32,000 nt of DNA from Guillardia theta nucleomorph (lineage: Eukaryota; Protista; Cryptophyta). The notes beneath the pieces are model-generated. The model had not been told where the DNA came from and searched no databases. It saw only the letters and a program-made list of their open reading frames with translations. Each line of letters opens with the position of its first letter. Within the stretch, counting starts at the first letter, position 1. The stretch spans positions 150,001 to 182,000 of the forward strand of contig AF165818.4 in the NCBI GenBank assembly GCA_000002975.1, written 5' to 3'. Below are positions 1,893-27,654 of the stretch, piece after piece. The translations under genes were made by a program, and so were the position numbers.

Positions 1893-3224
1893 ATGTTATT
1901 AAATAAACATTTAAGCGAGAAAAATATAGGTTTTTTTTTTTGTAATTTCATGCTTAAGAGGAAGAAAAACAATTCATGTCAAGTTAGAGTAATTTTAAAA
2001 TTTTTGAAAAAAATTAATTTTAATTTAAGTATTGGATTTCAAGAAAATATTACTGAGTTTTTGAATAAATCTAAAGTTTTAAAAAATTTATTAAAAATAA
2101 AAAGTTTTTTTGATAAACATTCGAATCATATAAAATTATACAGATTTAAGATTAATAAATTTTATAAAATTTTAATAAAAAATGCCAATATTAAGTATTC
2201 AAAATTATCAATCAAAAATAATAATAGTAATTATATGATAAATCCACTAATTAGAAATTTGCGATTTTTTAGAGACACTGAAATAGTTTTTAGATATCAA
2301 GATCAACTTTTAAATACGCTTACATGTGATCCTAAAGGAACTGAAACAGCAGATGATGCAATTTCATTAAATTTTTCAAAAAATTTGTCAACTATAGAAT
2401 ACGGAATGCACTTCCCTGATTTTTCTAATTTATTTGAAAATATTAATTTATTTTTTCTAAAATTATCTGAAATAAAACGAAAATCTTATTACCAAAAAAA
2501 GAATTATGATTTGTTGCCATTTTTTTTTTCTCAAAAGTTATTTTCACTATGTCCTTTAGTCGATAGATCTACAATTTCTATAACAACAAATATAGAACCA
2601 GTTTCTTTTATTAATATAATTAATCTAAAAAGAAGTGTAATAAAAAACAAAAGGTATATAAATTTTTTTCATTTAAAAAAGTTTTTTGATTTAATTATGA
2701 AATATTTAAACTTTCATGATAAAAAATGTTACTTCGAAGACATTTTGTACTTTTACAAAATTATAGCTTTTTCTTTTAAATCTAAAAGAATAAAATTGAA
2801 AAATTTTTATCAAAATTTGTTAGAAAAAAAAATTAATGATAAATATGATAAAAAATTGAACTCCTTCTATTCCTTTTTTAATCCTGATAATGAATATTAT
2901 TTTTATATGTCTAATATATTGTATGATAAAATTTCGTTTATTTTCCCTAATTTATCAAACTTTTTTTTATCAGATGTCTACAAAGTAAAAAAATTGGTTT
3001 ATAGATATCCTATTGAATTTTTTAACTACTACAATTATTTGTATCTAAAATCAAAATATTTTACCACTCAACCTATCTTGATGTTGTATAAAAATAAATC
3101 TAATTTGTTTAAAACTCAAATATCTTTAAAATATGGTTCAACAAATATTTTTATGAATATCAAATCACCTTTGAGGAAATTTAATCATATTATTAATCAG
3201 ATAAAAATAGTTAGAGTTTTATAA
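1893..3224 (+). CDS. Reduced, divergent RNase II/RNB-family exoribonuclease (Dis3/Rrp44-like)
   Basis: TCDPKGTETADDAIS (cf. SIDPPGC.DIDDAL), EYGMHFPDF (cf. EVGVHIADV), KSPLRKFNHIINQ (cf. TSPIRRY.D..VH). First ATG 1893; track start is TTG. Confidence 0.75.
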   Translation: MLLNKHLSEKNIGFFFCNFMLKRKKNNSCQVRVILKFLKKINFNLSIGFQENITEFLNKSKVLKNLLKIKSFFDKHSNHIKLYRFKINKFYKILIKNANIKYSKLSIKNNNSNYMINPLIRNLRFFRDTEIVFRYQDQLLNTLTCDPKGTETADDAISLNFSKNLSTIEYGMHFPDFSNLFENINLFFLKLSEIKRKSYYQKKNYDLLPFFFSQKLFSLCPLVDRSTISITTNIEPVSFINIINLKRSVIKNKRYINFFHLKKFFDLIMKYLNFHDKKCYFEDILYFYKIIAFSFKSKRIKLKNFYQNLLEKKINDKYDKKLNSFYSFFNPDNEYYFYMSNILYDKISFIFPNLSNFFLSDVYKVKKLVYRYPIEFFNYYNYLYLKSKYFTTQPILMLYKNKSNLFKTQISLKYGSTNIFMNIKSPLRKFNHIINQIKIVRVL

Positions 3225-3361
3225 ATTTTTAAGTTTAAAAAACAAAATTATATTTAAAAATATGACAAGTAATCTGAAATTTGGCGATCAGTTCTTCAAA
3301 TGAATTCAACCTTCATCTATCTAAATTAAATAATTTGTATAACTTCTTCAAGAATATAAAA

Positions 3362-4459
3362 ATGTTAAGAAAAACCGTTTGTTATGGAAAAAAAATAAAG
3401 GTTTATAAGATTTTCAATATTATTGAGGATTTTGATACATTTGAATATCCAAGAAAATATTCAGTCAAAATATTTGTTCTAATTAATAATTTACAAAAAA
3501 AAATCTCAAGTTTAAAATCTTTTAGTATTATTGAAATATGGAATTTCAAAAAAAATTTACATTCAAATAGACAAGGTTTTTTATTTTTCTCAATTGAAGA
3601 CATTATTTGGGGGATGCGAATTTTAAAATTTTCTGATTTTCCAGAGAAAAAATATATTGTAACTTTAAATGGCTTCGAATTACAGTTTTATCAAATCCCC
3701 GAAATCAATCCCATATTTTGGAAAATTATCAGTTTCTCTTTAAAAGTTTCATTTTTCAAAAATTTTCAATGGAAAATTTTTTATTTTCAACCTATTTTTT
3801 TTTCTTGTAATTTAAACGGTAAAATCATGATTTCACAAATAAATAATCTTTCTAATTGGAATCAACTTATCCATTCCGATGATAATCGGGCTCCTGTAAC
3901 TGCAATTTACTATAATAACACTTATAGTAGTAAAACCAAAATTATATTTACAGGTGGATACGATGGAATCGTAAAAATATGGAAAATAACATATAATATA
4001 AGCTGTGTTATCAAAATAATTTTGCATAAAAGTAGAATCACAGAATTGAATTTTTTAAAACTAAATGATCATGATTGTTATATTTTTTCATCATTTGATG
4101 ATGGCTGTATTGCTTATAATTATTTTGATAAGAATTTTCAGACTTTGATTACCAATTTTATAAATCATTATCAATCTACATACACGGAAATAATAGAAAA
4201 TATGATAATAGCAGTTGGAGACGAAGGAAGCATTAGTATAAAAGAAGTAGCGAGTCCCTATAATGAAGTGTTTTTAAATTATAATTCACTAAATATATTA
4301 AAAATCAATAAATTCAATATAAAATCAATGAAAAAAAATTTATTTTTGAGAAAAACCCTTCAAAGATATTCTTTAAAAAGCCATTTTTTTTTTAAATTAT
4401 ATAAATTAAATTATCATATTATAGTTTCAAATAACGGTATATTTATATTATTTAGATAA
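3362..4459 (+). CDS. WD40-repeat protein, orthology unknown
   Basis: PVTAIYY...IFTGGYDGIVKIWK, HKSRITEL...FSSFDDGCI and IAVGDEGSISI repeats. First ATG 3362; track start 3281 is TTG. Confidence 0.75.
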   Translation: MLRKTVCYGKKIKVYKIFNIIEDFDTFEYPRKYSVKIFVLINNLQKKISSLKSFSIIEIWNFKKNLHSNRQGFLFFSIEDIIWGMRILKFSDFPEKKYIVTLNGFELQFYQIPEINPIFWKIISFSLKVSFFKNFQWKIFYFQPIFFSCNLNGKIMISQINNLSNWNQLIHSDDNRAPVTAIYYNNTYSSKTKIIFTGGYDGIVKIWKITYNISCVIKIILHKSRITELNFLKLNDHDCYIFSSFDDGCIAYNYFDKNFQTLITNFINHYQSTYTEIIENMIIAVGDEGSISIKEVASPYNEVFLNYNSLNILKINKFNIKSMKKNLFLRKTLQRYSLKSHFFFKLYKLNYHIIVSNNGIFILFR

Positions 4460-4484
4460 ATAATAAAAATTTTTATAAATATTT

Positions 4485-5192
4485 ATGAATAACAACCAAA
4501 CATTATTTGATTCCGATGGTAAAATATTACAATTAGAATTTGCTCTAAAAATTCCTAACCAAGGAAAAATGATTTTTTCTTTTAAATCCATTAATCATTC
4601 ATATATTATATCTGAAATTCATGAAAAGAAAACAAATAATAAATTTTTCAACAGGTTTTATTCTATTGATAATAATATAGGCTTGGGAATTTCTGGAATT
4701 TTCTTTGACGCAAAAAAAATTTTTAATTTTTGTGTTGAACTTAATATCAAAATTAAACAAGCATTTAAAAATTTTTGTTCTGTTGAATACATTTCAAAAA
4801 AGATTTCTGAAGCATTTTCAAATAATACATTAAAAATTAACCAAAGGCCATATGCAATAAATGTTTTTATAATTGGGTTCAGTGACAAAGGACCTATAAT
4901 ATTTGAAATATCAACTGATGGGTTGATGACATATAAAAAAACTTGTCTCTCAGGATCATCAATTAATTCTTATACAAAAGAATTATTTTCGATTATTAAA
5001 AATGATAAAAAAATGTTAAATGATGAAATTTTTATGATTTCTTTTTATCAATGCATTAAAAAATCTGAAAAAAATTCTAGTAATCAAATTTTTTCATTAT
5101 CAATTTTAGGAAAAAAAACTAAATTTACAATTTTAAACAAAATAGTTGATAGATTTTATACTAAAATAATTAACACAAAATTTATTAAATAA
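4485..5192 (+). CDS. 20S proteasome alpha subunit, most like alpha6/Pre5 (PSMA1)
   Basis: TLFDSDGKILQLEFA alpha signature, NQG..FSFKSINH, IDNNIGLGISG..DA and RPYAINVFIIGFSDKGP. Confidence 0.88.
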   Translation: MNNNQTLFDSDGKILQLEFALKIPNQGKMIFSFKSINHSYIISEIHEKKTNNKFFNRFYSIDNNIGLGISGIFFDAKKIFNFCVELNIKIKQAFKNFCSVEYISKKISEAFSNNTLKINQRPYAINVFIIGFSDKGPIIFEISTDGLMTYKKTCLSGSSINSYTKELFSIIKNDKKMLNDEIFMISFYQCIKKSEKNSSNQIFSLSILGKKTKFTILNKIVDRFYTKIINTKFIK

Positions 5193-8100
5193 GCCCTGTA
5201 CCAATTGGAATTGAATTTCCAAAAATTATCGCATCAGAAACTCCAATATATTTACTTTTAGTATGATTTAAGGAAGCATTAAATAAGTTTTCCATTGTTT
5301 TCTCAAAACTTGCCAGCAAAAATACACTTTCCTTATTACATGTCAATCCTTCTCTATTTATTCCGATAATAAATCCATTAAAAGTCATATAGTCTGCTAG
5401 TAAATACACGTGTCTATTGTCAGAAAAAATCCCATGTGATTTAAAAGTATTTGTTATTTCCAAAACTATCAATTCTCTCGAAGCTTCAATTCCTAAAAAA
5501 TTATAAATAGAATTGATATTATTACAGTATAATTTCCTAAAAATTATTCCAGGGATGTTCAATAATATATCAAACCTATTGTCTGAGATTTTAATTTCTA
5601 AGTTATTAAATAAAAAGTTACAATTTATTTTACTCGACTCATAAAAACCTGTTAAAACTATATCACCAAAATGAATTCTAAAGAAATTATACAAATTTAT
5701 AAAGTTTAAATTAAAATCGTCAATTTTAAAATCATTTTTGTGGAACTGAAGAACTACGTTTTTTTTTTTTTTACATATGAAAACTGTTGACTTTTTTATA
5801 ATTTTAGTATTGTCATGAAATTTTTTGATAATAAAATAATAAATTTTTGATTGATCCAGATATTCATAAATTTTTTTGATGAAATGAATTTTTACAGACA
5901 CGAAACCTCTATGTAAAAATATTTCAATTGAGTTAATTAAAAATCCGATTTTTATCTTTTTTAAAAAAAATTTTAACCTTGATTTTTTTTTGTTAAATTC
6001 AAAAAAATTTATATCATAAGATATTAATGGGAATTTTGTGTTTTTAGAATTACTTAATATTTCGTTTATTCTGGGAATTCCAGAAGTAATATTTTGGCTA
6101 CCAGTCCCGGCAGAGTGGAAGGTTTGCAATGTCATTTGAGTACCGGGTTCGCCTAAACTTTGGGCAGATATGCATCCTACCCCAGTGCCAGGATCTATTA
6201 TAACCAATTTAAAAGTTTGAAAATATTTTTTTATTAAAATTTCAAAATAACCAAAGTTAGATTTTATATTTAAAATTTTTTCAAAATTAATTTTATTTCT
6301 CAGATTTATACTAAAGGTTAAACTATCGAAAAATCTTAAAAAATGAGCTCTTAAAAAAACATAAAGTAAATAATTATCTGTGGATTTTTTTAGTTTCAAT
6401 GAAAAATCGAATGAATTAATTGAATAAAATTTCGAAAAATTTTCTGGGTTGACATTGTCACCGCCAAATGTAAATTGATAAATTCTACCAAAGGAATCTC
6501 TAACTGTAGAATCGTTCATTATAGAAATATCTTCAAGAGATTTTACTAATCTCCTCTGAAGATATCCTATTTCTGCAGTTTTAACTGCAGTATCGATTAA
6601 ACCTTCACGACCAGCCATTGAATGAAAAAAAAATTCTTTTGAATCTAGTCCTGAATAGAAACTGTTCTCTATGAGCCCTTTTTCGTTAAATAACATATTT
6701 TCTTTTTTAAAAGATTGAGATGGTAAAATTCTATAACTAAATCCATTTAAAATTCTTTTTGCAGAGATCATCTGCTGACCAAGTGTTAACATCATTTGAA
6801 CTAAATTAAGCTGCGACCCTTTAGAGCCTGATGCTACCATAATTGATGCTGAATTGTTGTCTATATTTTTAGTTGTAACGCAAATTCTCCCTAAATCTCC
6901 TTTTACAGAATTGAGAATAATATTTAGTTTTTCTTCAAATGTATCCAATACCATTAAAGAATTTTTATTTGTAATTTTCTTTTTATAGTTCAGAGATTGA
7001 TGTACGTTCTTAGCTTTGGAAATTATTTGTTCTTTTTTTTTACAAATTACTTTTGAAGGTTTAACATTGTTGATTGAAAATGAGAATCCATAGTTAGAAA
7101 ACCAGTTTTGATTTAAAATTGAAATTTTAAGTATTGAATTTAAAATTTCAGATGCAGAATTATTGTTTCTTGAAAAAGAAAATAATGACATCTTATTTCC
7201 TGTACCTAATGATGTTTTACCAAGTCTACCTGATAAAATAAGATTATTTTTTATGATTGTCCAGCCTTCTATTGGGCAAACAAATGGAGAACAAGTATTA
7301 AATTGTCTTGAAGTAAATTTTTCTCTAATTTGATAATTGGTTTTTTGTTTTTTTATGAGGTTTAAATGATAATAATTTTTATCAAAAAACAAAATTTCTG
7401 AAAAAATCTGTTTACCTGTCCATAATATTTTAGGTTTTAAAATTGCTGGTAAAATGTTATTAAACAAATCGCTAACTTCTCCAGAAATTAAGCCTGTAAC
7501 TTCTTCTTTATTAAAAAAAATATTTCTCGATGTCAAAATAAAAGAATATGACAAAAAGTCTTGCGAGCATGCTATCAGAATTTCTCCGTTCCTAGGTGTA
7601 TAAAAGTTATTATACGAGTTTAAAAGAGTAATAGCTTCTGTTCTAGAAGTTTCACTTTGAGGAACATGTAAGTTCATTTCGTCACCGTCAAAATCTGCAT
7701 TATAGGGCTTACAAACACAATGGTTTAATCTGAATGTTTTTTCTTTAAATATTCTAATTCTATGAGCCATGATAGATAGACGATGTAAAGATGGCTGTCT
7801 ATTAAATAGAATTATGTCATTTTTAACAAGATGTCTTTGTATCGAATTTCCTATTTTGGAAAAAAACATCATATTTTTTTTGTTTGATTTATTCAAGAAT
7901 ATTTTTTTATTATCTCTAGTTATGACAGAAACTACTCCTGGGTATCTATCATTGCCTCTTAAAATACATCTTTTTAGTCTTTCATAATTATAAAAATTCA
8001 ATTTTTCAGGAAAAGATAAATTTTTGCAAATTATAATTGGAATTCCAATTTGAGATAAAAATAGATTTGGATCAGGTGATATGACAGTTCTAGCAGAAAA

Positions 8101-9054
8101 ATCAACTCTTTTGCCGATTAAAGTACCTCTAAATCTTCCATTTTTACCTTTTAGTCTCTGAAATACACCTTGAAATTTTAAATTGAATTTTTTTTGGAAA
8201 AAATCTGAATCAAAATATTGATAGCATTCTATTTGTAAAAATGTCCATAATTCTTTTATTCTATTATAATTCATATTTTGTTCAAGCTCATACTTGAGTT
8301 TTTTGTTAGTGTTTTGAATCGAAGCTAATTTAATTGTTAAGTCATCTTCATTAGTAGTGTAAGTATCAATACGAATACTAGGCCTTATTATTGAAGGTGG
8401 AATCGGAATAAAAAAAAAAATTAAATTTTCAATTCTAAAACCATAATCGTTAACACCAATAAGTTCCAAATCTTCTGCATTTATCTTAGAAAATATTTGG
8501 AAAATTTTAAGTGGTCCTAAAATTTCATTAATTTCATTTTTAGAATTATCTATATCATGTAAAAAAGCTAAATTACTAATTTTTCTTATTTTTCCATTTG
8601 AAAATTCGCAATTTGGGCATTTCCTATGTGATTTGCATTTTTCTAAGATATTAAAATAGATTTTTTTTTTTTCAACTTTATTATTTGAATTCTTACCGAG
8701 CAAGAAACTGAAATGAATTTTTTCTTTTGAGGATCTAAGTAGTAAACTTGAGCATCTCTTACAAACCATTTGCAGAATGCATTGGATTGTTTTGATAAAA
8801 CCTAAATTTAAAACTGGCATTGATAACCTTAAATGCCCATAATGTCCCTGGCAAAATTTAAATTTATCTTTACAGAATGAACAGATTTGATTCCTAATAT
8901 TTCCAAGTTTTTCGTCTAAAAGACTACCTTCTTGAGATGTATTCTTATCTTTCAAAAAAATATTTGAATTAGTCAATTGAATCGTTGAATATCCTGAAAT
9001 TTCTTCTCTAGAAAATATTTTGAATTCAATTTCATGTATAAAATTTTTTTGCAT
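5185..9054 (-). CDS. rpc1: RNA polymerase III largest subunit
   Basis: CQGHYGH zinc motif, QRLKGKNGRFRGTLIGKRVDFSARTVISPDPNL, NRQPSLHRLSIMAH, catalytic YNADFDGDEMNLHVPQ and ESVFLLASFEKT; no CTD heptads. Confidence 0.95.
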   Translation of the reverse strand: MQKNFIHEIEFKIFSREEISGYSTIQLTNSNIFLKDKNTSQEGSLLDEKLGNIRNQICSFCKDKFKFCQGHYGHLRLSMPVLNLGFIKTIQCILQMVCKRCSSLLLRSSKEKIHFSFLLGKNSNNKVEKKKIYFNILEKCKSHRKCPNCEFSNGKIRKISNLAFLHDIDNSKNEINEILGPLKIFQIFSKINAEDLELIGVNDYGFRIENLIFFFIPIPPSIIRPSIRIDTYTTNEDDLTIKLASIQNTNKKLKYELEQNMNYNRIKELWTFLQIECYQYFDSDFFQKKFNLKFQGVFQRLKGKNGRFRGTLIGKRVDFSARTVISPDPNLFLSQIGIPIIICKNLSFPEKLNFYNYERLKRCILRGNDRYPGVVSVITRDNKKIFLNKSNKKNMMFFSKIGNSIQRHLVKNDIILFNRQPSLHRLSIMAHRIRIFKEKTFRLNHCVCKPYNADFDGDEMNLHVPQSETSRTEAITLLNSYNNFYTPRNGEILIACSQDFLSYSFILTSRNIFFNKEEVTGLISGEVSDLFNNILPAILKPKILWTGKQIFSEILFFDKNYYHLNLIKKQKTNYQIREKFTSRQFNTCSPFVCPIEGWTIIKNNLILSGRLGKTSLGTGNKMSLFSFSRNNNSASEILNSILKISILNQNWFSNYGFSFSINNVKPSKVICKKKEQIISKAKNVHQSLNYKKKITNKNSLMVLDTFEEKLNIILNSVKGDLGRICVTTKNIDNNSASIMVASGSKGSQLNLVQMMLTLGQQMISAKRILNGFSYRILPSQSFKKENMLFNEKGLIENSFYSGLDSKEFFFHSMAGREGLIDTAVKTAEIGYLQRRLVKSLEDISIMNDSTVRDSFGRIYQFTFGGDNVNPENFSKFYSINSFDFSLKLKKSTDNYLLYVFLRAHFLRFFDSLTFSINLRNKINFEKILNIKSNFGYFEILIKKYFQTFKLVIIDPGTGVGCISAQSLGEPGTQMTLQTFHSAGTGSQNITSGIPRINEILSNSKNTKFPLISYDINFFEFNKKKSRLKFFLKKIKIGFLINSIEIFLHRGFVSVKIHFIKKIYEYLDQSKIYYFIIKKFHDNTKIIKKSTVFICKKKKNVVLQFHKNDFKIDDFNLNFINLYNFFRIHFGDIVLTGFYESSKINCNFLFNNLEIKISDNRFDILLNIPGIIFRKLYCNNINSIYNFLGIEASRELIVLEITNTFKSHGIFSDNRHVYLLADYMTFNGFIIGINREGLTCNKESVFLLASFEKTMENLFNASLNHTKSKYIGVSDAIIFGNSIPIGTGLI

Positions 9055-9096
9055 TATAAATATACTTTAATATTTAATTATCTATTTAGGATTCTT

Positions 9097-9636
9097 ATGG
9101 TTAGATCTTTAAGATATGAAGAATTAAGAATTATGTTCTGTAATATTTTGAAGTATATAGGAGAAAATATTAGTGATTTTATACAGAAAGTGATTGATTT
9201 AGAAATTTACTTTAGGCTATATCGTAAAAGAATTTCTTTTTCTAAAAAAAAATTAATTAACAATTCGAACTGTTTTACCTTAAAAAAAATAGCAAGTGTT
9301 GGAGTTTTTATGGGAAAATTCTTCATTGGAAAAAGATTTTTGTTTTTTATTTCTTTTATAAATGTTATTAAAGGATTTGATACTTATAAATACGGAGTTG
9401 TTAGTTCTCATGGTGAAAAACATTTTACTAAAGGTAATAATCTAAAAAGATCTCATTTCATTAAGATATCTAATAATTTTGTTAAAGGAGATGGGATATT
9501 TATTAAAGATAATTCTAATAACATTCTAGGATTTGGATTGACAACGAAAGATTATTATATTGTAAAATCTAATCATCCTAATCTTTTGTTAATCAACTTT
9601 AGCGACGTAGGAATTTATATTCGAATAAAATATTAA
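9097..9636 (+). CDS. nip7: 60S biogenesis factor Nip7 (PUA domain)
   Basis: MVRSLRYEE...LKYIGENI...YFRLY, GEKHFTKGNNL, ILGFGL and DVGIYIR. ATG 9097 aligns with homolog starts and avoids overlap with rpc1. Confidence 0.85.
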   Translation: MVRSLRYEELRIMFCNILKYIGENISDFIQKVIDLEIYFRLYRKRISFSKKKLINNSNCFTLKKIASVGVFMGKFFIGKRFLFFISFINVIKGFDTYKYGVVSSHGEKHFTKGNNLKRSHFIKISNNFVKGDGIFIKDNSNNILGFGLTTKDYYIVKSNHPNLLLINFSDVGIYIRIKY

Positions 9637-9681
9637 ATTAATAATTAATTATTTTAAAAATAATTTTATATACTATTGATA

Positions 9682-10101
9682 ATGCAAACTGAAAAAATTA
9701 ATAAATTTAGAAAATTTAACTTTAGAGGATTAGATCTTTCAAACTTAATGAATTTAAATTCAAAAGGATTAATGAAAATTCTTAACTCAAGACAGAGACG
9801 AAAGTTGAGTAGAGGACTGAAGATGAATAATTTGAGATTGATAAAGAAGCTTCGAAATTCTAAAGCAAATGCAAAAACAAAAAAAATTATCCTAACTCAT
9901 TTGCGAAATATGATAATTATTCCGGAAATGATAGGCAAAAGTATTGGAATTTATAACGGAAAACTTTTTAACAACATTGAAATCAAGCCGGATATGATTG
10001 GACATTATCTGGGTGAATTTTCTATAACTTACAAACCAGTAAAACACGGCAAACCTGGAGTAGGAGCTTCAAGTTCTTCAAAATATGTTCCATTAAAATA
10101 A
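9682..10101 (+). CDS. rps15: Cytosolic 40S ribosomal protein S15 (uS19)
   Basis: [47 protein letters not shown]. First ATG 9682. Confidence 0.97.
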
Positions 10102-10102
10102 T

Positions 10103-10175
10103 TGCTCGACACAGGATTCGAACCTGTGACATTCGCGTTATTAGCACGACGCTCTAACCTCTGAGCTAGACGAGC
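10103..10175 (-). tRNA. trnI(AAT): tRNA-Ile(AAU)
   Basis: Minus strand GCTCGTCTAGCTCAGAGGTTAGAGCGTCGTGCTAATAACGCGAATGTCACAGGTTCGAATCCTGTGTCGAGCA folds as a 73-nt cloverleaf with anticodon AAT, GTTCGAAT T-loop and one U-U mismatch in the acceptor stem. Confidence 0.95.
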
Positions 10176-10178
10176 TTG

Positions 10179-10865
10179 ATGACAATTAAACTAAATTTAT
10201 ATGGTAAAGAAGATATTGGGAATTATATTTTATTAACTAACTCTTATTGTATTGTTCCACACGATATTAATTCAAAAAATTACAATATAATTAAATCAGA
10301 GTTAGATAATAAAATAAATATAATTTGCACAAACGTATCAGAGTCAATTTGCGTAGGCAATTTGTTGATCGGTAATTCTAAAGGTTTAATCGTTCCAAAT
10401 ACTATTACGTTTCATGAACAGAATGAGTTGTTAAATTTTTTACCAGAAAAAGTGTTAGTAAAAAAATTTAATGAAAATTTAACAAATTTAGGAAATCTTT
10501 TGGCACACAATGAATTATATGGTCTATCTAGTCCTGATTTATCTCAGAGCTCTTGTGAATTAATTTCTGATGTCTTAGGAGTAGAAATTTTGAAACTTAC
10601 GCTGGGTGAAGAAAAAATGATTGGAACTTATTGTAAATTCAACATTAATGGTGGAATTGTACAACCTTTTCTTTCAATAGAAGATCATGATGAATTAGTG
10701 GAAATTACAGGAGTTCCATTTATCGGAGGAACTGTAAATTCAGGGTGTTCAAATGTGGGTAAAGGAATTGTTTGTAATGACAATCTTGTTTTTTGTGGAT
10801 ACAAAACAAACCAAACGGAAATGCATATTATAAATAATATAATGAAAAAATCAAAAAATAAATAA
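10179..10865 (+). CDS. eif6: Translation initiation/60S anti-association factor eIF6
   Basis: DIGNYILLTNSYC, GNSKGLIVP, LISDVLGVEI, GGTVNSG and GIVCND repeats. Confidence 0.95.
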   Translation: MTIKLNLYGKEDIGNYILLTNSYCIVPHDINSKNYNIIKSELDNKINIICTNVSESICVGNLLIGNSKGLIVPNTITFHEQNELLNFLPEKVLVKKFNENLTNLGNLLAHNELYGLSSPDLSQSSCELISDVLGVEILKLTLGEEKMIGTYCKFNINGGIVQPFLSIEDHDELVEITGVPFIGGTVNSGCSNVGKGIVCNDNLVFCGYKTNQTEMHIINNIMKKSKNK

Positions 10866-11600: not shown

Positions 11601-11811
11601 GAAAAATCTACGGTTAGATCAACAAAGTTTTCAATATAAAAAATCGAATTGTCTATAGATTAAATTGACAAGTTTATAATTGAAGAATATAAGAAGAAAC
11701 TTTAGGTAAGGAATAACTATTTTTCTAAAATTATTAAATGTTTAAATTGAATACTAGGCTATATATTTTAATCTTTTTAAGTAAAATTATAATCTTGATT
11801 ATTTAATTTTA

Positions 11812-21657: not shown

Positions 21658-24662
<3,005 letters not shown>

Positions 24663-24665
<3 letters not shown>

Positions 24666-24795
24666 GTTTTCATTTTAATTTTATACATAAAATTGTGAAC
24701 AATATCTGTGTTAAATAACATTTTAATCATAAAACTTTATATAGATATGCGTGTGAGCTTTTACTCATTTTAAGATCCTGTACAAGTACAGTCAA
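24663..24795 (-). ncRNA. Candidate miniature U3 snoRNA
   Basis: Minus strand begins TTGACTGTACTTGTACAGGATCT (GAC box, box A' TACTT, box A CAGGATC complementary to the conserved 18S 5' GAUCCUG). C'-like ATGATTA at 24730-24724, D-like ATGA at 24673-24670, terminal stem AAGTTT/AAACTT. Ends are estimates. Confidence 0.7.
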
Positions 24796-24875
24796 TAAAA
24801 AAAATAAAATGTATTAGTATTTTTTTTAGCAAATTATTATCTTCTGTATGAAATTATAGTGACATTGTATTACAC

Positions 24876-27020
24876 ATGTTTGTTTACAAAAATCTGTTAA
24901 TAAAGATCTTTAATAAGAGATTCAGTTCAAAAAAAAAATTTATAAAAAATTACGAATATATTTATAAAAAATATATTAAAAAAAAAGATACAAATGAAAA
25001 AATAGCAATTAAAATTTTTATTAATAAAAATTTTTCCAAAATATTTGATTTTTTTAAAAGATATAATCACTTGTACATCTTAAAACCAATAAGCATAAAA
25101 TGTTACTTAATTACAATTTTAAAAAACTTGAATAATATATTTTTTGTGAATAATTGGTTTATTAACGCACAAAATAAAAAAATTTTGAGAAGTTTTTTAA
25201 TTTTTAATATTATTTTTGAGAATAATTTTTTAATCTGTAAAACAGAAATGTTAAATAAATACACCACATGTTCCTTAAAAATGAAGGTAATTTTTATAAA
25301 AAAAAAAAGTTTTATAAATTTAATACATTATAGTAAGATAAAAAATTATAATGATAGCATACTTAAATTGAAAAAAAATATTAAAATAAAAAATTTCATA
25401 AACTTAATTTTTATTTTCTATAATTATTCAATTGTTTCAAATTTCAAAAAATATGAACATTATGATTTTTTATCAACATTATATTTTTTAAAATATATCA
25501 AATTTTCATTAAGTATCTTTACAATTGTTTTAAAAAATATACAATCATTAATTAAATATTATTTTTTTAATGATTTTAATAGATTGTTTCTTTTTTTTAT
25601 TTATATTAGAATTAATAATTATAATTGGTACTATCAAAGTATTTTTAATGAAATGAAAAATTGCTTTAAAAACAGCATTGATTTTTTTATAGCATATTCA
25701 ATCAGATCATTAAATATTTCAAGAATTTTAATAAAAAGAATATTTGTAAATTATTTATCTATTAAATGCAATTTTTATATTAAAAACTTATTATCTATTA
25801 ATAGTAAAAGTTTCAATTTAACTTCTGATTCCGTAAAATTAATCACTCTAAATCAAAAAGAATGTAAAAAATACTTTTTGAATTTAATGCAAAGTAATTC
25901 AAAACTAATTGAAACTTTTTTTATTTTGAAAAAAATGAAAAATAATAATAAAGTCTTGTATTCATTTAAAAATTTGATTATTTTTAATATGTTTTATTTT
26001 CTAGTATCAAGTAATTTTAAAATATCTACATTATATAATATTGAAAATAAAAAATTGAATCTTCATATTTCACTATGTAATAAAATTTTGAAAAATTCCT
26101 CGATTGATTATTTGATTAATATTAAATTATTAAATGTATTATATAAAAATTTGAGATATAAAAAATTAACACCATTCTCTATTTTATATCCAAACCAAGA
26201 ACATGTTGTATTTTTAAGAATTGAAAACAAATTTATAAAATCAGTATCATCTAAAAGTTCAATTTTTTCAAATGACTGGTTGCAGCTTTTTTCAAAAAAA
26301 TTATCAAAGAAATATTTATCTCTAGAAATATTTTTTTTTTTAAATTTTAAGAAATCATTTTATTTCAAAAAATATTCTTATAATTCTGTTGATAAAGTTT
26401 CAATTGACATTGAAAAAAATCAATTAACAATCATAAAAAACCACGTCTTTAAATATCTTGAAAACAAAAATGAAACATATTCTAATAATAATTTTCTTTT
26501 CTCATTAATATTTAACCATAGATTTTTCAATGATATGATTAAAAATACAAAGTATAAATATTTGATAAAAAACCTAGTAATTATTTTAAGTATTAAAAAT
26601 TTTCCATTTTACGATACACAATACTTTGAATCTACAAAAAATGTTGAAAGTTACAAATTATTTACAAAAAAAATCGGAAGTATATATTTATTTTTTAAGA
26701 ATTTCAAAATTCGACTTAGAACTAGACGTAAATTGAATTTCTACCTAATCGTATTATTAATTAGTAAACTTTCTAAAATCAAGGAGGAATGTTTTAATTT
26801 TAAAAATAAAAAACTATCTAAAACGTTAAAGTCATCAAATGTAAAAAATCAAATAATTCTAAATTTACTATCCAGTTTTTTTTTATCTAATCTAAAAATA
26901 TATATTAGTTTTTATGGAAATAGAAAAAATAATTTTAATTTTTATGATAGATCAGAATCATTTATTTTTATTAATAATAAAAAATTTTATAAAATATTAG
27001 AAATGTTTATTATATTATAA
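24876..27020 (+). CDS. Hypothetical protein (ORFan orf714, K/N/I/F-rich)
   Basis: 714 codons without a stop in very AT-rich DNA implies coding; no motif recognised. Confidence 0.65.
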   Translation: MFVYKNLLIKIFNKRFSSKKKFIKNYEYIYKKYIKKKDTNEKIAIKIFINKNFSKIFDFFKRYNHLYILKPISIKCYLITILKNLNNIFFVNNWFINAQNKKILRSFLIFNIIFENNFLICKTEMLNKYTTCSLKMKVIFIKKKSFINLIHYSKIKNYNDSILKLKKNIKIKNFINLIFIFYNYSIVSNFKKYEHYDFLSTLYFLKYIKFSLSIFTIVLKNIQSLIKYYFFNDFNRLFLFFIYIRINNYNWYYQSIFNEMKNCFKNSIDFFIAYSIRSLNISRILIKRIFVNYLSIKCNFYIKNLLSINSKSFNLTSDSVKLITLNQKECKKYFLNLMQSNSKLIETFFILKKMKNNNKVLYSFKNLIIFNMFYFLVSSNFKISTLYNIENKKLNLHISLCNKILKNSSIDYLINIKLLNVLYKNLRYKKLTPFSILYPNQEHVVFLRIENKFIKSVSSKSSIFSNDWLQLFSKKLSKKYLSLEIFFFLNFKKSFYFKKYSYNSVDKVSIDIEKNQLTIIKNHVFKYLENKNETYSNNNFLFSLIFNHRFFNDMIKNTKYKYLIKNLVIILSIKNFPFYDTQYFESTKNVESYKLFTKKIGSIYLFFKNFKIRLRTRRKLNFYLIVLLISKLSKIKEECFNFKNKKLSKTLKSSNVKNQIILNLLSSFFLSNLKIYISFYGNRKNNFNFYDRSESFIFINNKKFYKILEMFIIL

Positions 27021-27573: not shown

Positions 27574-27654
27574 TACGACTTGAGAGTTTCGAACTCCCGA
27601 CCTACTGCGTGTAAGACAGTTGCTCTGTAATAATAACCACTGAGCTAAAGTCGC
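27574..27654 (-). tRNA. trnV(TAC): tRNA-Val(UAC) with an ~8-nt D-loop insertion (probable non-canonical intron)
   Basis: Minus strand GCGACTT TA GCTC AGTGGTTATTATTACA GAGC A ACTGT CTTACAC GCAGT AGGTC GGGAG TTCGAAA CTCTC AAGTCGT A: 81 nt with a 16-nt D-loop. Confidence 0.92.

Follow-up and report, generated by a model that had tools for sequence, protein, structure and literature searches.

The minus strand of positions 24663..24795 in the window that we analyzed, a 32,000-nt stretch of the Guillardia theta nucleomorph genome (chromosome 1, 150001-182000), very probably encodes the nucleomorph's own homologue of the U3 snoRNA, strongly reduced in size (~132 nt, or ~131-133 nt with the uncertainty at the ends). 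U3 snoRNA guides early 18S rRNA processing. We base the identity on a U3-type 5′ domain, a C′/D kink-turn that coincides with the mapped 3′ end of the RNA, homologues in related contigs that score significantly with Rfam U3 models, and genes for U3-associated proteins in the nucleomorph; the same evidence upholds the first-pass annotation, which had proposed a very reduced U3 snoRNA at this locus. Three other readings (a decaying relic of U3, an antisense regulator of snf1, and a methylation guide) are unlikely. The RNA has already been published as the orphan small RNA GtNM-R21, and its identity as U3 is new here. Genome-wide searches covered the 551,264-bp assembly, consisting of three contigs of 196,216, 180,915, and 174,133 bp.

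The locus lies between two plus-strand genes: the protein kinase gene kin(snf1) (23247..24665; Pkinase domain, E = 3e-76) and orf714 (24876..27020), a 714-aa ORF without a Pfam family whose name agrees with PMC6461891. The spacer between them (24666-24875) is 210 nt long and is, as had been claimed, one of only two spacers of that size in the window; the other (11601-11811) has no Rfam match and showed no evident RNA motif. With nt 1 of the minus-strand RNA set at 24795, the 5′ domain (24774..24793) contains GAC at nt 3-5 (24791-24793), box A′ UACUU at nt 8-12 (24784-24788), and box A CAGGAUC at nt 16-22 (24774-24780). A hairpin, UGAGUAAAAGCUCA, occupies nt 29-42 (24754..24767) and consists of GAG, a loop of 4-5 nt, and CUC. 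The 5′ strand of the terminal stem, AAGUUU (nt 59-64; 24732..24737), is followed by a single U and by box C′ AUGAUUA (nt 66-72; 24724..24730), and, beyond an inner domain of 50 nt (24674..24723), where ~50 nt had been predicted, box D AUGA (nt 123-126; 24670..24673) leads into the 3′ strand of the terminal stem, AAACUU (nt 127-132; 24664..24669). Every element of the minus-strand order originally read at this locus was thus recovered and placed to the nucleotide. The 3′ end of the RNA (24664/24663) falls within the snf1 stop codon, the three terminal nucleotides being antisense to TAA at 24663-24665; the overlap between the 3′ stem and the stop codon is therefore as first described.

The locus produces a discrete and very abundant RNA with a protected 5′ end. 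GtNM-R21 is described as an orphan small RNA without an assigned function; kin(snf1) and orf714 are its neighbors, and 130 nt of it lie within the spacer (Asman, Curtis and Archibald 2019, PMC6461891); the interval 24666-24795 is exactly 130 nt and so equals the published spacer portion. In that study the RNA ranked second in abundance among nucleomorph small RNAs (TPM 23,000-38,000), and it was not reduced by Terminator exonuclease, unlike most methylation guides (PMC6461891). Its 5′ end is therefore capped or triphosphorylated. In a tiny sequencing run from 2019 (X9), assembled contigs covered only 24663-24793, with word depths of 3,000-10,750, in close agreement with the proposed boundaries of 24663-24795. 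One X9 contig (depth 3,083) carries 11 T before 24663 on the plus strand, which corresponds to a nontemplated A-tail on a minus-strand RNA. Judging by its year and size, run X9 is a small-RNA library made with poly(A) tailing, and the kit used for the 2019 study adds poly(A) to RNA (PMC6461891). The A-tail places the RNA on the minus strand and its main 3′ end at 24664/24663, 1 nt beyond the terminal stem. The discrete minus-strand transcript of ~130 nt that had been predicted is thus present in the X9 contigs as well as among the highly expressed published RNAs. Raw stranded RNA-seq (X13) gave 143 reads, mostly partial alignments, with a first-mate-on-plus bias that fits a minus-strand RNA; we did not rely on it.

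GtNM-R21 was published as 171 nt long, with a 43-nt overlap with the downstream gene and without reported homologues (PMC6461891). The X9 contigs (~132 nt) do not reproduce this length or overlap. Longer contigs in other runs (24629-24779 and 24611 onward) show that read-through or precursor forms exist, and the 171-nt species may be a 3′-extended precursor or a read-through product. U3 is nowhere mentioned in PMC6461891, and our literature search found no mention of GtNM-R21 in any other paper or of a U3 snoRNA of a nucleomorph.

The first-pass annotation had placed a U3-type GAC/A′/A block at the 5′ end of the RNA, and this was borne out: 19 of the first 22 nt are identical to the consensus of the Rfam family ACEA_U3. 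When up to two mismatches are allowed, the degenerate U3 5′ pattern GACNNTACTYNNNCAGGATC has a single occurrence in the window where 0.03 would be expected, so the block is not a chance match. We scanned metagenome contigs with the 5′ 20-mer (one position free, one Y) and obtained at least 120 loci. Among the matches listed, most resemble ordinary U3 genes of ~200 nt; the canonical box A tail follows the 20-mer in 107 of 127; and 10 of 20 sampled loci exceed Rfam U3 gathering scores, while most of the sampled loci below those thresholds lie within U1/U2/U4/U5 gene clusters. As a side observation, many protist contigs from metagenomes (L018, L019, L024, L027, L028, L032, and L038) have U3 in tight clusters with U1/U2/U4/U5 snRNA genes, sometimes together with 5S rRNA or SRP RNA.

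We located the nucleomorph rDNA by DNA pattern, in six copies at the chromosome ends. Nucleotides 9-15 of the nucleomorph 18S rRNA (GAUCCUG) are the complement of box A (CAGGAUC), and the 5′ domain is also complementary to AGUAUGGUC in the 18S central domain. The best duplex between nt 1-24 of the RNA and the first 1,520 nt of 18S rRNA was formed with GGAGUAUGGUCGC (-23 kcal/mol; 0 of 40 shuffles as good), and this central-domain segment is what we take to be the box A′ site of processome structures. That box A and box A′ match their own 18S rRNA at these two places is a weak discriminator, and it indicates compatibility with nucleomorph rRNA rather than specificity for it, because the box A/A′ targets are universal in eukaryotes. 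The hinge (nt 23-62) gave a different result: its best ungapped match in the 1.5 kb upstream of 18S was 11 bp at -1114, equaled by 44 of 300 shuffles, and RNAduplex returned z = -0.3. Hinge-5′ETS complementarity is no better than that of shuffled sequence, and this counts against the U3 reading.

Rfam covariance models had been proposed as a check on the locus, and for the locus by itself their support was weak. At gathering thresholds, the window contained two tRNAs and nothing at the RNA locus. In a permissive search, ACEA_U3 (RF01848) was the best match at the locus and had no other match genome-wide; its score is below threshold (16.4 bits vs. a cut-off of 55), and nearly all of it comes from the first 22 nt of the RNA. 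The general U3 model (RF00012) and Plant_U3 (RF01847) returned no match in the whole genome.

Related cryptophyte nucleomorphs carry conserved, covarying homologues of the G. theta RNA. We reached contigs of relatives through close homologues of the snf1 protein; they share the gene order SMC, rps15, Sey1-like, PI4-kinase, snf1 and have ~25% G+C, and one of them encodes a protein named for Teleaulax amphioxeia. In three (L009, L012, and L013), the minus strand just after snf1 opens with the same 20-mer. Two further AT-rich loci of the short form (L035 and L042) were present among the matches listed in the 20-mer scan, L035 antisense just after snf1 and L042 in another neighborhood, beside a 918-aa ORF and a tRNA gene. 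There are thus at least five homologues in cryptophyte-nucleomorph-like contigs, 150-157 nt in length, four antisense after snf1 and one elsewhere; the synteny beside snf1 that was to be checked is present in L009, L012, L013, and L035 and breaks down in L042. The 5′ 20-nt block is identical in all six short genes (G. theta and the five relatives), so the conservation of GAC/A′/A that had been looked for in related nucleomorphs extends to every one of them. Other contigs with snf1 and different neighbors (L010, L011, and L014-L017) yielded no homologue at E up to 1.

The relatives are also recognizable with existing U3 models. L009 scored 38.8 bits against Rfam U3 (E = 1.7e-6 locally, 3.4e-4 in 54 kb), L012 36.1 bits, and L042 27.4 bits, all three in full-length alignments, and in the Rfam alignment of L009 its UGAUGA falls on the C′ box of the model. 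The snf1 gene closest to that of G. theta (76% identity), on contig L008, seems to be split into a 367-aa part and a fragment. At the syntenic spot of that contig (L008:6395-6530, minus strand), the sequence AACUGUACUU followed by GGCUC and ending in AAAAUAAAAC resembles a decayed U3 by eye; this candidate was supported neither by the covariance model described below nor by pairwise alignment, and we rejected it.

We built a covariance model (R1) from the five relatives only, leaving G. theta out. R1 aligned over its full length (model positions 1-156) to exactly 24663-24795 in G. theta, with a score of 55.3 bits (E = 1.4e-8 in the window set, 8.9e-8 genome-wide). The next match had E = 0.33; because R1 finds nothing else below E = 0.3 genome-wide, the gene is single-copy. 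If a full-length R1 match is taken to define a cryptophyte nucleomorph mini-U3, the G. theta locus belongs to the group. Default covariance-search filters lost true matches in DNA of 23-30% G+C, including two of the R1 training sequences, and the lost matches were found when the R1 search was repeated with filters off.

The secondary structure was set by hand, since MAFFT misaligned G. theta with the relatives and RNAalifold paired the C′ box. With this structure, 95% of the cells in the six-sequence alignment were paired and five pairs changed on both sides; either value was reached by 0 of 500 shuffles, and sliding the partners destroyed the signal. With just six sequences, all fitted to a model, the basis is small, and we treat this covariation as supportive only. 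All four pairs of the hairpin after box A are kept in all six sequences, one of them with a one-sided change. In the terminal stem, two of the six pairs show two-sided changes, with C-G replaced by A-U at one position and C-G, A-U, or a mismatch at another. The predicted fold of the RNA was no more stable than shuffled sequences (z = 0.02), and the minimum-energy fold lacked the terminal stem.

In the G. theta RNA, the kink-turn comprises the stem of nt 59-64 with nt 127-132, a bulge of U65, A66, and U67, the noncanonical pairs G68.A126, A69.G125, and U70.U124, and then U71-A123. The C′/D kink-turn, closed by its 6-bp terminal stem, ends at the mapped 3′ end of the RNA. The relatives have the canonical C′ UGAUGA (UGAUUA in L035), the canonical D CUGA, and a terminal stem of 5-6 bp, and both boxes of G. 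theta are noncanonical (UGAUUA and AUGA). Position 6 of C′ faces position 1 of D as a G-C pair in four relatives, as U.C in L035, and as U-A in G. theta, which agrees with the compensated C′/D pair initially suggested.

The B/C motif, the binding site of a second Snu13 and of Rrp9 in other eukaryotes, is degenerate in the G. theta RNA. The Rfam model places boxes B and C on opposite strands of an internal loop that is flanked by an outer helix and an inner hairpin. The corresponding layout is present in four relatives, in which the outer helix is followed by (A/G)GAUUA in the 5′ strand, a hairpin of 4 bp, and AAUGA(A/U) in the 3′ strand; their loop matches the ACEA_U3 arrangement (an outer helix and an inner hairpin around a 6 x 6-7 loop) and is off-consensus in sequence. 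In a classical kink-turn such as that of U4 snRNA, AAUGA forms the bulged strand. The relatives' motif is nevertheless noncanonical because the partner strand does not have the expected GA next to the hairpin. The inner domain measures 64-66 nt in the relatives and 50 nt in G. theta, where a degenerate B/C region surrounds a small hairpin, AUUG-UUCA-CAAU. The AAUGA element is deleted from G. theta in the model alignment, the nearest look-alike being AUGU, so that no box B/C kink-turn is recognizable, as the first reading of the locus had stated. We read this state as secondary loss or decay because the relatives keep a B/C-like internal loop. In G. theta, AAAAUGAAAAC is identical to the box C side of the relatives (AAAAUGA) merged with their box D side (UGAAAAC) at a shared UGA; from the letters, AUGA may have been left as box D by a deletion that brought boxes C and D together, as an alternative to a compensating point change. 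It is possible, and we suggest it only tentatively, that the G. theta processome runs on a single-kink-turn U3 from which B/C and the Rrp9 site have been lost, perhaps leaving AUGA as the C-D deletion scar, and that this is the smallest natural U3 snoRNP known.

We searched the nucleomorph for proteins that accompany U3. Among the nucleomorph ORFs, IMP4 was the best PDB hit of the one at chromosome 1, 114380-115000 (4e-32), Sof1/DCAF13 of the one at chromosome 2, 133187-134281, and Utp12/WDR3 of the one at chromosome 1, 132341-134605. Fibrillarin, Snu13, Nop56, and Nop58 are also nucleomorph-encoded (PMC6461891). Mpp10 had no Pfam match in the nucleomorph, in a search for which the control genomes were all prokaryotes. 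Rrp9 was the best PDB hit of none of the eight WD40 ORFs tested, two of which were unassignable. These two WD40-like ORFs, which have no assignable homologue among solved structures, are at window positions 3281-4459 (plus strand, 392 aa) and on contig C3:25235-26305 (minus strand, 357 aa). They alone could still conceal a very divergent Rrp9, and the missing U3 partner proteins could also be host-encoded and imported.

Most likely, the RNA acts as U3 does elsewhere, chaperoning pre-18S rRNA within a reduced processome. Snu13 would bind the C′/D kink-turn and recruit Nop56, Nop58, and fibrillarin. Box A would pair with the 18S rRNA of the nucleomorph at nt 9-15 and the GAC/box A′ segment with the central-domain sequence AGUAUGGUC. 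Such pairing would hold the pre-18S rRNA open in a small-subunit processome that includes Imp4, Sof1, and Utp12, and the early cleavages around 18S could then occur.

The best-placed rival is that the RNA is a decaying relic of U3, transcribed and no longer processing, with a host-encoded U3 imported into the periplastidial compartment serving instead. The degenerate B/C region, the noncanonical C′ and D boxes, and an inner domain 14-16 nt shorter than in the relatives speak for this reading; the failure to find Rrp9 and Mpp10 genes in the nucleomorph points the same way, as do the possibly decayed copy at the syntenic site of L008 and the view of the authors of PMC6461891 that RNA import is possible for U5. 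Against decay, however, the RNA is one of the two most abundant small RNAs of the nucleomorph, its 20-nt 5′ block is invariant across six lineages while its stems covary, the G. theta change in C′/D restores a Watson-Crick pair, and Imp4, Sof1, and Utp12 are kept in a genome of 551 kb. We therefore consider a relic improbable.

A much less probable reading is that the transcript regulates in cis, as an antisense RNA of the snf1 3′ end or from the orf714 promoter region, with a U3-like 5′ end by coincidence. The RNA does overlap the snf1 stop codon, it is antisense to snf1 in five of the six lineages, nucleomorph transcription is pervasive and overlapping (PMC6461891), and longer contigs in runs X4 and X5 extend across the locus. 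In G. theta, however, the RNA and snf1 share just 2-3 nt, and the RNAs of the relatives end 120-150 nt from snf1; the L042 homologue is not beside snf1 at all. Conservation sits in the U3 boxes and not in the snf1-facing part, and the 20-mer would be expected by chance only 0.03 times per window even with two mismatches. Equally hard to credit is an ordinary 2′-O-methylation guide with a long 5′ extension, since, for all its C-like and D-like boxes and terminal stem and the eleven such guides encoded in the genome (PMC6461891), the RNA has its C box 65 nt from the 5′ end, an invariant 5′ domain and no conservation upstream of box D among the six homologues, a length of 132 nt that is about twice the 56-98 nt of the guides (PMC6461891), and was left an orphan by those authors' own C/D screen.

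Compared with the U3 families of Rfam (clan CL00100; closest family ACEA_U3), the G. theta RNA is a real U3 homologue in a reduced variant. It shares GAC/A′/A, C′, D, and the terminal stem in the order of the model, with which the relatives align end to end, and like U3 it is an abundant, 5′-protected small RNA. It differs in length (~132 nt vs. model lengths of 209-221), in its C′ (UGAUUA) and D (AUGA) boxes, in the replacement of the canonical box A tail AUUUCUAUAG, and in the B/C segment, of which the 51 nt in ACEA_U3 are almost wholly missing in L009 and unrecognizable in G. theta. Trypanosome U3 presumably retains boxes B and C. Published U3 lengths are 143 nt in Trypanosoma brucei, 180 in Euglena, 217 in human, and 333 in yeast (PMC2784804); the T. 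brucei and nucleomorph RNAs are both naturally shortened, and the nucleomorph RNA is the shorter by ~10 nt. GtNM-R9/SNORD14 (U14), another box C/D RNA encoded by the nucleomorph, has likewise been implicated in the processing of 18S rRNA (PMC6461891), but it is also a methylation guide, has canonical C/D boxes at its ends, and has no GAC/A′/A domain.

Identification as U3 gives a function to a published orphan that ranks second in abundance among the small RNAs of a model nucleomorph, and it shows that this relict nucleus has kept the gene for the RNA at the center of 18S maturation along with those for Imp4, Sof1, and Utp12. The six genes define a small family of cryptophyte-nucleomorph miniature U3 RNAs of ~132-157 nt. 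They form a natural series, from canonical C′/D with a B/C-like loop to noncanonical C′/D with no recognizable B/C, in which it can be tested directly what a U3 snoRNP minimally requires and whether Rrp9 is needed. R1 can be used for U3 annotation in other nucleomorph genomes.

A AATGTCTGTA-like element is found at a roughly fixed distance of ~62-71 nt upstream of all six mini-U3 genes; in G. theta it reads AATGTCACTA (24857..24866, minus strand). The five relatives also have a TATA-like box at about -25, and the two elements may together constitute an snRNA-type nucleomorph promoter. The loose form of the upstream motif occurs five times in the window and is weak and not specific on its own. 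An element similar to it, AATTGTCTATAGA, is present in the other 210-nt spacer (11648-11660, plus strand). Elsewhere in the window, the Rfam alignment of a tRNA gene at 27574-27654 (minus strand) shows a 10-nt insertion in the D-loop region. Homologous tRNA genes at L009:10449-10529 (minus strand) and L035:2212-2292 (plus strand) have an insertion of 10-11 nt at the same place, so this insert is conserved across nucleomorph lineages.
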